From assembly GCF_001194135.2 (NCBI RefSeq), contig NC_068985.1:39678024-39741537 (forward strand): DNA of 63,514 nt, in the 5' to 3' direction. A program made the position numbers and the translations under genes. Origin of the DNA: Octopus bimaculoides. Lineage: Eukaryota. How positions within the stretch are numbered: the first letter of the stretch is position 1; each line of letters begins with the position of its first letter. Shown here one piece after another: positions 52,890 through 53,979 of this stretch. Under the pieces are notes generated by a model. The model made no database searches, had not been told where the DNA came from, and worked only from the letters and a program-made list of their open reading frames with translations.

Positions 52890-53488
52890 TCAATTCACTG
52901 TGAAGAAAGTCCACTGGGNNNNNNNNNNNNNNNNNNNNNNNNNNNNNNNNNNNNNNNNNNNNNNNNNNNNNNNNNNNNNNNNNNNNNNNNNNNNNNNNGG
53001 AAAAAAATGCTTTTTAATTGATGTATCAATACCAGCAGATAACAACGTTTCCCTAAAAGAAATGGAAAAACTTTCAAAATACAAAGACCTGGAAATAGAG
53101 GTAACTCGAATGTGGAATCTAAAAACAGAAACAATTCCTATCATAGTAGGTGCCTTAGGTATAATAAAAAAAATATTCAGACAAATACATAACAAAAATA
53201 CCAGGACTTACAAATATATATAACATACAGAAAATTGCACAACTGGGTACTGCACACATCCTATGCAAAACACTTTAAATACAGTAACCATAAGAGCATC
53301 ACAGCAAATCACAGCACATACCCAAGGCACACAGAGCTGCACTCGGTAGTGAAGTGAAAGCACGTTATAAAAATAAAACTACTGAATAATAATAATAATA
53401 ATAATAATAATAATAATAATAATAATAATAATAATAATAATAATAATAATAATAATAATAATAATAATAATAATAATAATAATAATAA
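52890..53488 (+). mobile_element. R4/Dong-clade LINE 3' end (restriction-like endonuclease) with (AAT)n tail
   Basis: KKCFLIDVSIPADNNVSLKEMEKLSKYKDLEIEVTRMWNLKTETIPIIVGALG, an REL-type motif; 3' UTR then ~104 nt (AAT)n. Confidence 0.85.
53385..53488 (+). repeat. (AAT)n microsatellite (LINE tail)
   Basis: Direct reading. Confidence 0.98.
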
Positions 53489-53521
53489 ATGCGCTTTTTT
53501 AATATTTTGATAATATTCCAG

Positions 53522-53861
53522 GTGATATCAAGGAAACTTTTACTGATGACGGCAGCATGTCTTTTGACATCGATGATACTATTTTGACGGTAGAGTCACT
53601 TGAAAGTGATGCTGATCACATGAGAATGCAACCACCGTTTAAGAAAAATGCAGCGGACCAAATAAAAAGTGCTGATGAAATGAAGAAACAGTTAGACAAC
53701 CTAACTGTTATGTACTATCAAATGTCTCGCATGATTAACCAAAAGCAGTCCAGTCACGCCCGAAGACCATGGAGCATCGCCAGTTCGGAAGCCAGTTCAC
53801 TAATTCGAGAGAATCAAATGCAGAAAAACAAGTCTCTGCGAAACAAGGTCATACAAACACG
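53522..53861 (+). CDS. Coding exon 5 of SAM gene (GDIKETFTDDGSMSFDIDD...RRPWSIASSEASS...KVIQT-R)
   Basis: Acceptor atattccag|GT, 340 nt, donor CG|gtaggt, phase 1-2; contains ORF 53557-53865. Confidence 0.88.
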
Positions 53862-53886
53862 GTAGGTATGCGTGGTGAATACACTG

Positions 53887-53979
53887 ATTATTATTATTAT
53901 TATTATTATTATTATTATTATTATTATTANNNNNNNNNNTATTATTATTATTATTATTATTATTATTATTATTATTATT
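53887..53979 (+). repeat. (TAT)n microsatellite (contains a 10-N gap)
   Basis: Direct reading. Confidence 0.97.

Follow-up and report, generated by a model that had tools for sequence, protein, structure and literature searches.

The window (the whole 63,514-nt stretch of Octopus bimaculoides DNA analyzed here) contains a multi-exon gene on chromosome CM046605.1, represented by the models XP_052824287, XP_052824288, and XP_052824289, which are named "putative uncharacterized protein DDB_G0277255/DDB_G0291812." Window positions 30172 to 61902 correspond to 39708195 to 39739925 of that chromosome (GCA_001194135.2). The protein has a C-terminal SAM domain (residues 597 to 648) and a weak coiled-coil match (residues 468 to 522). 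Among the coding exons located by tblastn (Table 1) is one of 340 nt, with acceptor ...ttccag/G and donor ...ACG/gtaggt, in which one frame is open over 112 codons and which is 100% identical to P0001-P0003 (tblastn). The initial annotation called it exon 5, a number that does not hold: it is the eighth coding exon in the current RefSeq models and the ninth when the upstream cassette exon (49554-49988) is counted. It encodes the motif MSFDIDDTILTVES, invariant in all six aligned cephalopod sequences; apart from the SAM domain, no part of the protein is better conserved. Candidate branch points (UUAAU, with A at about -20) can be read by eye in the 33-nt spacer before its acceptor.

TABLE 1 Coding exons, repeats, and predicted pairing partners around the 340-nt exon (window positions)
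Feature	Position	Strand	Remarks
Coding exons 1-4	33622-33753, 34969-35097, 40055-40234, 40383-40490		tblastn
Coding exons 5-7	43000-43185, 44897-45019, 46361-46586		tblastn
Coding exons 8-11	53522-53861, 55094-55450, 58368-58442, 59735-59902		tblastn
Inverted transposon pair, 394 nt, left arm	48840-49222	+	Partner 57922-58309, 89% identical, -700 kcal/mol
Cassette exon, 435 nt	49554-49988	+	Frame-preserving; probably "exon 4" of the initial annotation
(CA)n tract	52351-52411	+	Complementary to (GT)n at 55943-55987 and 57590-57645; -90 to -98 kcal/mol
3' end of LINE-like retroelement	52999-53384	+	Sense to the gene; translation
LINE 3' ends, pair	53258-53400 with 55477-55614		143 nt, 79%, -151 kcal/mol; brackets the 340-nt exon and the next
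(AAT)34.7 tract	53385-53488	+	Apparently expanded 3' tail of the LINE-like element; TRF
Acceptor-side spacer, 33 nt, tgcgcttttttaatattttgataatattccag	53489-53521	+	A/T-rich pyrimidine tract, acceptor AG
Coding exon, 340 nt	53522-53861	+	Phase 1 to phase 2; residues ~356-468 of XP_052824288.1
Donor-side spacer, 25 nt, starts GTAGGT	53862-53886	+	Sequence
(ATT)n tract	53887-53979	+	43 nt + 10-N gap + 40 nt; adjoins SINE-like 5' end
Assembly gap, 10 N, inside ATT tract	53930-53939	.	Also in GCA_001194135.2
SINE-like array, four tandem same-orientation copies	53980-54801	+	blastn against copies in the window
SINE-like copies	About 53980-54135, 54193-54385, 54387-54590, 54599-54801	+	A/T-rich ATT/ATTT-like spacers between copies
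Next coding exon, 357 nt	55094-55450	+	Coiled-coil segment, N/S-rich run
Inverted second copy of LINE-like 3' end	55470-55640	-	85% mean column identity; (TAA)4-5 tail
Inverted transposon pair, 394 nt, right arm	57922-58309	-	Partner 48840-49222

The 340-nt exon is present in five O. bimaculoides models, in the O. sinensis model, and in the transcripts (762 to 798 residues) of a third cephalopod, whose isoforms differ at the N terminus only; a one-exon fragment from a further source (P0106) also matches it. No model or transcript lacking the exon was found among P0001, P0002, P0003, P0224, P0004, and the P0005 cluster. The exon that does vary among models is its neighbor, the 435-nt cassette, which is carried by an older model (XP_014777184.1, P0224), by O. 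sinensis P0004, and by the P0005 transcripts, which come from a more distant cephalopod, and which is missing from the current RefSeq isoforms; the cassette peptide has no Pfam match. The presence of the 340-nt exon in every model, together with the invariance of MSFDIDDTILTVES, points to an exon that is constitutive and under selection, although its presence there argues only weakly for constitutive use, since models would report neither a frameshifted skip isoform nor a circular RNA. Its length would not preserve the frame if it served as a cassette exon. In a transcript that skipped it, translation is predicted to run from ...EKTML through 23 aberrant codons to a stop inside the next coding exon, with the coiled coil and SAM domain missing from the product; the frameshift and the loss of both features agree with the initial annotation.

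Two trinucleotide tracts bracket this exon. The upstream one is a perfect (AAT)n array (100% matches, TRF score of 208) that closes with AATAAA (53484-53489) and ends 33 nt before the acceptor; the downstream one, recovered both by TRF and by an inverted-repeat search, is an (ATT)n array that begins 25 nt past the donor. TRF and the sequence confirm the bracketing and the two spacings reported in the initial annotation. The outer limits given there also stand for both tracts, except that the downstream tract, 93 letters long, includes 10 that belong to an assembly gap, so that the bases actually read in it make up two stretches of 43 and 40 nt. The ATT array scores 93% in TRF because this gap lies inside it. 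The repeat phase agrees on both sides if the gap is taken to be 10 nt long, the 83 nt read are a lower bound on the length of the tract, and the two halves read are 100% complementary to the upstream arm. The gap is intronic, and the reading frame is therefore unaffected.

That the ATT tract, or the junction across the 10 Ns, was misassembled and the long tract is not real seems to us very improbable. Such an error would not be out of character for a short-read scaffold assembly in which 13 of the window's 22 gaps adjoin microsatellites, the gap at 50072-50430 sits between the copies of a 227-nt exact duplication, and an (AC)n-N-(TG)n junction occurs at 33205-33294; the sole public record that we found with the gene is this same assembly, GCA_001194135.2, gap included. 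However, both halves of the ATT tract are anchored in unique sequence (the donor flank on one side, the SINE head on the other) and share one repeat phase, and the order of the exons is confirmed by the protein models. O. sinensis keeps the same order of donor flank, ATT-like tract, and SINE head, contiguous and with nothing between them, which supports the continuity of the ATT tract indirectly. The gap most likely marks a repeat whose length or heterozygosity was beyond the reach of short reads.

Non-LTR retroelements carry microsatellite 3' tails, which can expand after insertion, and the AAT tract resembles these, being an extension of the (TAA/AAT)n tail native to a LINE-like 3' end. Preceding the tract are 386 nt that consist of an ORF remnant (...DVSIPADNNVSLKEMEKLSKYKDLEIEVTRMWNLKTETIPIIVGALG...), ending ...IPIIVGALG..., followed by a 3' UTR; the 74-aa remnant has no Pfam match, and the 5' side of the element is lost in the gap at 52919-52998. 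This LINE-like 3' end occurs twice in the window and also at the orthologous site in O. sinensis. The second, inverted copy (55470-55640), matched at 55499-55614 on the minus strand in a similarity search, starts 26 nt past the donor of the 357-nt exon and ends ...AAAACTACTGATTAATAATAATAATA, and the orthologous O. sinensis copy ends ...AAAACTACTGGATAATGATAATAATAAA. Since (TAA)4-5 closes the inverted sister copy, the AAT motif can be assigned to the element as its native tail, and the upstream tract is the retrotransposon tail for which the initial annotation took it.

The ATT tract has a different neighbor. It occupies the place where an A/T-rich spacer of the SINE-like array would be, and the SINE-like family has 22 matches in the window, on both strands (blastn). 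We also considered the ATT tract as the tail of a minus-strand LINE copy and rejected this origin, there being no LINE homology after the tract or after the SINE array. A tRNA-derived origin of the SINE-like repeat was likewise unsupported, as ARAGORN finds no tRNA-like gene, and an Rfam search of positions 46592-58367 returned no known RNA family.

We compared this arrangement with the orthologous locus of O. sinensis (L002; 35 kb with no N), which was reached through the orthologue XP_036359007.1 (P0004, 92% identical). There the 340-nt exon keeps its splice sites and is 98.5% identical, the acceptor spacer is nearly identical, the donor spacer differs by one substitution, the LINE-like 3' end lies at the orthologous position (L002, 24967-25366; 91.8% identical), and the downstream tract again leads into this SINE head. 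The tracts themselves are 104 nt and at least 83 nt long and pure in O. bimaculoides, versus about 17 and about 27 nt in O. sinensis, whose upstream tail is only GATAATGATAATAATAAA, interrupted, and whose downstream tract is ATTATTATTAGTATTATTATTATCATTCATTTATTTAA, with 27 nt of it ATT-like at 83% matches, and also interrupted. The best cross-exon AAT/ATT duplex in O. sinensis reaches only -20 to -23 kcal/mol, and the short ATT seed has three complementary (AAT)n partners in its own intron. The long complementary match is thus not conserved in the O. sinensis orthologue, and the long clamp is lineage-specific, since the O. sinensis tracts are short and interrupted even though that species has the exon and its splice sites as well as the LINE end and the SINE. 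The purity of the O. bimaculoides tracts suggests that they expanded recently on that lineage, a direction drawn from a comparison of two species. We take O. sinensis to be a member of the O. vulgaris group. The split of O. bimaculoides from that group is dated to 13.3 to 33.5 million years ago (PMC13282606). AAT-class tracts of at least 24 nt number 15 in the 35-kb O. sinensis locus versus 2 in 58 kb of O. bimaculoides, which suggests that many such tracts go unseen in the short-read O. bimaculoides assembly.

The short O. sinensis versions also bear on whether each tract might act singly, as a putative AU-rich protein-binding site beside a splice site that tunes exon inclusion or intronic polyadenylation. 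The candidate elements would be a U/AU-rich enhancer past the donor (of TIA1 or ELAV/Hu type), a UAAU branch-point-like run, and the AAUAAA at the end of the upstream tract. U-rich intronic enhancers are well known, the tracts lie close to the splice sites (33 nt from the acceptor, 25 nt from the donor), and AATAAA stands at 53484-53489. AU-rich intronic regions are moreover enriched in ELAV motifs (PMC12404201). Nevertheless, the exon is used in O. sinensis with short tracts, so the long ones are unneeded for its use, and AU-rich sequence is ubiquitous in the introns of this gene; we regard separate action of the tracts as distinctly unlikely.

The two tracts beside the 340-nt exon are the only AAT-class tracts of at least 15 nt in the window. 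When the window's 45 microsatellites were placed at random, a complementary pair fell near both ends of some internal exon, within 50 nt, in 0.15% of trials; the rate rose to 0.65% within 100 nt and to 13% within 500 nt. Such a placement is unlikely to arise by chance for one gene. Applied to about 20,000 multi-exon genes (a rough assumption), the per-gene rate implies that dozens of such cases should be expected genome-wide. The closeness of the tracts to the splice sites follows from the insertion sites of two transposons, both of them common to O. sinensis. Reverse-complementary repeats flank four of nine internal exons here and three of ten in the O. sinensis orthologue, so that flanking of this kind, which the initial annotation had weighed as possibly commonplace, proves to be so within this gene in both species. 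One of the O. sinensis cases consists of (ATT)n and (AAT)n tracts, 47 to 53 nt long and independent of the present pair, around a different exon. Among the literature searched, we found no description of complementary microsatellites as pairing elements and nothing useful on octopus AAT microsatellite statistics.

Folding of naked RNA supports the proposal, made in the initial annotation, that the two reverse-complementary tracts could form a long duplex looping out the exon. Folded alone, each tract has a minimum free energy of 0.0. Together they are predicted to form an all-A-U duplex of about 83 to 93 bp with an energy of -81 to -97 kcal/mol: filling the gap in phase gives 93 bp and -96.8 kcal/mol, whereas for the two halves read the values are -42.1 and -38.8 kcal/mol. 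Clamping brings a net gain of -97 kcal/mol at 37°C and of -135 kcal/mol at 18°C. In a 2.7-kb context, the in silico pairing probability is 0.85 to 0.95, with 0.95 for pairing of the downstream tract with the upstream one. The predicted duplex loops out exactly the 340-nt exon in a 398-nt loop, and no competing inverted partner was found within either flanking intron. The arms (43 and 40 nt perfect, against a 104-nt partner) exceed the threshold of about 30 to 40 nt for flanking complementary matches, and the predicted duplex also passes the mark of more than about 50 near-perfect bp for a substrate of ADAR hyper-editing. A-to-G substitution, tried as a crude proxy for editing, was uninformative, since G pairs with U more stably than I does.

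Several other inverted pairs occupy the same region, and per base pair the AAT/ATT duplex is the weakest of them. The LINE 3' ends pair across the 340-nt exon and the next (Table 1), as do the (CA)n/(GT)n tracts, of which the (CA)n arm is complementary also to a (TG)n tract at 45178-45233. The 394-nt transposon pair brackets three exons, namely the cassette, the 340-nt exon, and the 357-nt exon.

A predicted duplex of this strength raises the possibility of a species-specific, length-polymorphic splicing modifier, in which pairing on the nascent pre-mRNA would draw the exon's acceptor and donor close to each other and measurably yield a 340-nt circular RNA and/or a skipped, frameshifted mRNA, with an output set by the length of the tracts and by ADAR or AU-binding proteins. 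The folding result (-81 to -97 kcal/mol, P about 0.95, no within-intron competitor) favors it, and the large difference in length between species indicates that the tracts are mutable. In vivo, however, proteins probably cover single strands made of A and U only, and a hairpin whose loop measures several hundred nucleotides has less effect on splicing in cells than in vitro. The stronger pairs that span neighboring exons (-151, -700, and -90 to -98 kcal/mol) would compete with it, and because skipping destroys the protein, a high rate would amount to loss of function. Inverted repeats of 30 to 40 nt beside splice sites suffice for circularization, and the spacing here is like that of minimal circularizing introns, but the reaction can be inhibited when the arms are of low complexity, as with poly(A), and stability is no predictor of its efficiency (PMC4201285). 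Complementary matches promote both back-splicing and skipping (PMC8330042), and AU-rich matches bound by ELAV promote neuronal circular RNAs in flies (PMC12404201). In octopus tissues, however, circular RNAs are low overall, for which ADAR has been held responsible, and back-splicing does not differ from that in other invertebrates (PMC9699675). The long match is not conserved in O. sinensis, and the exon is conserved and found in all models. We therefore consider a splicing modifier unlikely, and the functional splicing switch envisaged in the initial annotation is not borne out: the long tracts are absent from a species in which the exon, its splice sites, and both insertions are conserved.

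The clamp is instead probably a by-product of repeat turnover, neutral or slightly deleterious, and not a conserved regulatory device. Ordinary turnover is favored over a built-in switch because the tracts appear to be recent expansions of transposon tails and are short in O. sinensis. Under this reading, a LINE-like retroelement with an (AAT)n tail would have inserted 33 nt upstream of the acceptor before the species split, and a SINE-like array with ATT-like, A/T-rich spacers would have come to rest about 25 nt downstream of the donor, both insertions being tolerated by a constitutive, conserved exon. Two short A/T-rich seeds would then have expanded on the O. bimaculoides lineage, and the opposite polarity of these seeds would account for the reverse complementarity of the tracts that grew from them. 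As naked RNA, the tracts should pair in an all-A-U duplex of about 83 to 93 bp or more with the exon looped out. Likely consequences would be low-level back-splicing and/or a frameshifting skip, along with A-to-I hyper-editing in the introns, by which the duplex itself would be weakened, and such effects would be neutral or mildly deleterious noise over normal inclusion.

Several observations sit less easily with a by-product, among them the 13-nt match that suffices in zip-2 (PMC8330042) and the AU-rich matches around neuronal circular RNAs of flies (PMC12404201). That both seeds became long in one lineage is a coincidence that this reading leaves without explanation. The placement is rare for a single gene at the 50-nt distance (0.15%), and the geometry (perfect arms of at least 40 nt, spacers of 33 and 25 nt, a 398-nt loop, and no rival partner within either intron) resembles that of minimal, efficiently circularizing constructs (PMC4201285).

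It is quite unlikely, in our estimate, that the lengthening of two transposon-tail microsatellites, one on each side of the exon, gave rise within about 13 to 33 million years to a de novo all-A-U intronic duplex of at least 90 bp that yields a species-specific circular RNA and/or a frameshifting skip isoform; in that case, the output may scale with the mutable lengths of the tracts and be damped by ADAR editing. If this were true, the locus would hold a naturally length-polymorphic complementary match made of complementary microsatellites. Were the duplex to affect splicing, the long tracts of O. bimaculoides and the short ones of O. sinensis, set around the same exon and the same insertions, would offer a natural experiment on A-U microsatellite pairs in back-splicing and skipping and on their interplay with coleoid editing. 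The main lesson, on the by-product reading that we prefer, is that the repeat-rich introns of octopus readily produce complementary pairs around exons and that such pairs are not to be taken as regulatory without comparative or transcript evidence. As flaws of annotation and assembly, the analysis also brings to light the conserved 435-nt cassette missing from the RefSeq isoforms and the duplicated block over a gap.

Known systems resemble this locus in part. As in the circularizing exons of human ZKSCAN1 and HIPK3, which are flanked by inverted repeats of Alu type (Liang & Wilusz 2014, PMC4201285), complementary sequences lie in both adjacent introns, within 100 nt of the splice sites, and the arms are retroelement-derived and longer than 30 to 40 nt. 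Unlike the complex sequences of those genes, the octopus arms consist purely of A/T trinucleotide repeats, for which many pairing registers exist, and circularization of the octopus exon would be a prediction. In Drosophila, neuronal circular RNAs are flanked by AU-rich, ELAV-bound complementary matches (Alfonso-Gonzalez 2025, PMC12404201), which share with the octopus pair a very low GC content and an invertebrate setting; the fly matches are not microsatellites. A 13-nt match suffices in Caenorhabditis elegans zip-2, where it is conserved in five nematodes together with the skipping (Cao 2021, PMC8330042), and like the octopus pair it surrounds an exon and could favor back-splicing as well as skipping. 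In contrast to zip-2, the long octopus match is absent from the sister species, and the octopus skip would shift the frame. Length-polymorphic intronic microsatellites are known to tune splicing, as with (TG)m(T)n in CFTR intron 8, which affects exon 9, and (CA)n in NOS3 intron 13. The octopus tracts likewise are mutable simple repeats near the splice sites of a coding exon, but those of CFTR and NOS3 are single tracts that work through protein binding or the quality of the polypyrimidine tract, whereas the octopus exon lies between two tracts that form a complementary pair.

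Exons of this SAM-domain gene are also enclosed by inverted repeats other than the AAT and ATT tracts beside the 340-nt exon (53522-53861). Among potential pairings between introns of the gene, that of an inverted transposon pair is the strongest by a wide margin. The pair encloses a 435-nt coding exon together with the two exons after it; a comparison of the corresponding O. sinensis introns, 7 and 9, revealed no counterpart. A second, inverted copy of the LINE-like 3′ end follows the donor of the next exon much as the ATT tract follows that of the 340-nt exon. With 53258-53400 it forms a 143-nt inverted pair (79%) that brackets both the 340-nt exon and the next exon. 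The orthologous O. sinensis site keeps (ATT)4, and the corresponding LINE-like body lies ∼400 nt farther downstream (29807-29908 of the O. sinensis orthologous locus, L002).

Features of the O. bimaculoides window and, where stated, of the O. sinensis orthologous locus (L002)
Feature	Coordinates	Strand	Remarks
Transposase-like open frame	25841-26170	+	identified by eye only
Transposase-like open frame	38194-38622	-	identified by eye only
Inverted transposon pair, 394 nt	48840-49222 and 57922-58309		89% identical; -700 kcal/mol
Coding exon, 435 nt (multiple of 3)	49554-49988		splice sites good: aaag/GA ... AATG/gtaaga
227-nt block, two copies	49845-50071 and 50431-50657		100% identity; either side of 359-N gap 50072-50430
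LINE-like 3′ end, second copy, inverted	55470-55640	minus	begins 26 nt past donor of next exon (55094-55450)
L002 exon	11167-11268		three (ATT)n upstream, (AAT)14 downstream; tracts at 9509-10285 and 14082-14136

The RefSeq isoforms now current for O. bimaculoides (XP_052824287-9) lack the 435-nt exon, which the older model XP_014777184.1, the O. sinensis orthologue XP_036359007.1, and a transcript of a distant cephalopod all carry. Either the exon is a genuine cassette or the annotation has lost it. Its 3′ end and donor fall within a 227-nt block that is single copy in O. sinensis and is repeated here across an assembly gap, most likely as a gap-closing duplication artefact, and this duplication may be the reason for loss of the exon from the annotation.

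Repeat lengths and some junctions in the O. bimaculoides assembly are unreliable: microsatellites adjoin 13 of the 22 N runs in the window (e.g., 33205-33294, 9089-9747, and 30150-30250), and across one gap (AC)n is joined straight to (TG)n. AAT-class tracts of at least 24 nt number 15 per 35 kb in the gap-free O. sinensis locus versus 2 per 58 kb in the O. bimaculoides window, reflecting either many tracts hidden in short-read assembly gaps or a species difference.

The AAT tract upstream of the 340-nt exon closes with a canonical AATAAA (53484-53489) that lies 33 nt upstream of the acceptor and precedes a T-rich stretch; this motif is a candidate cryptic intronic polyadenylation signal. The next exon holds an imperfect (CAA/CAG/AAC)n coding repeat (55286-55361) encoding an N/S-rich run, NNTNNNNSNNSHNNNSNSSSNNN. 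The repeat shows small indel differences in O. sinensis, and the distant cephalopod orthologue lacks it. Elsewhere in the window, two open frames look by eye like the C-terminal part of mariner/Tc1-type transposases (example peptides, ...WPPRSSDLTPMDFFFEGV... and ...WQHDSAPCHSS...NFWLPDFPDCNLMD...).

The O. sinensis locus provides an independent case of an AAT/ATT pair, in the same gene but around another exon (L002 11167-11268), where the upstream (ATT)n and downstream (AAT)14 tracts share 47 to 53 nt of complementarity at distances of 0.9 to 2.8 kb.
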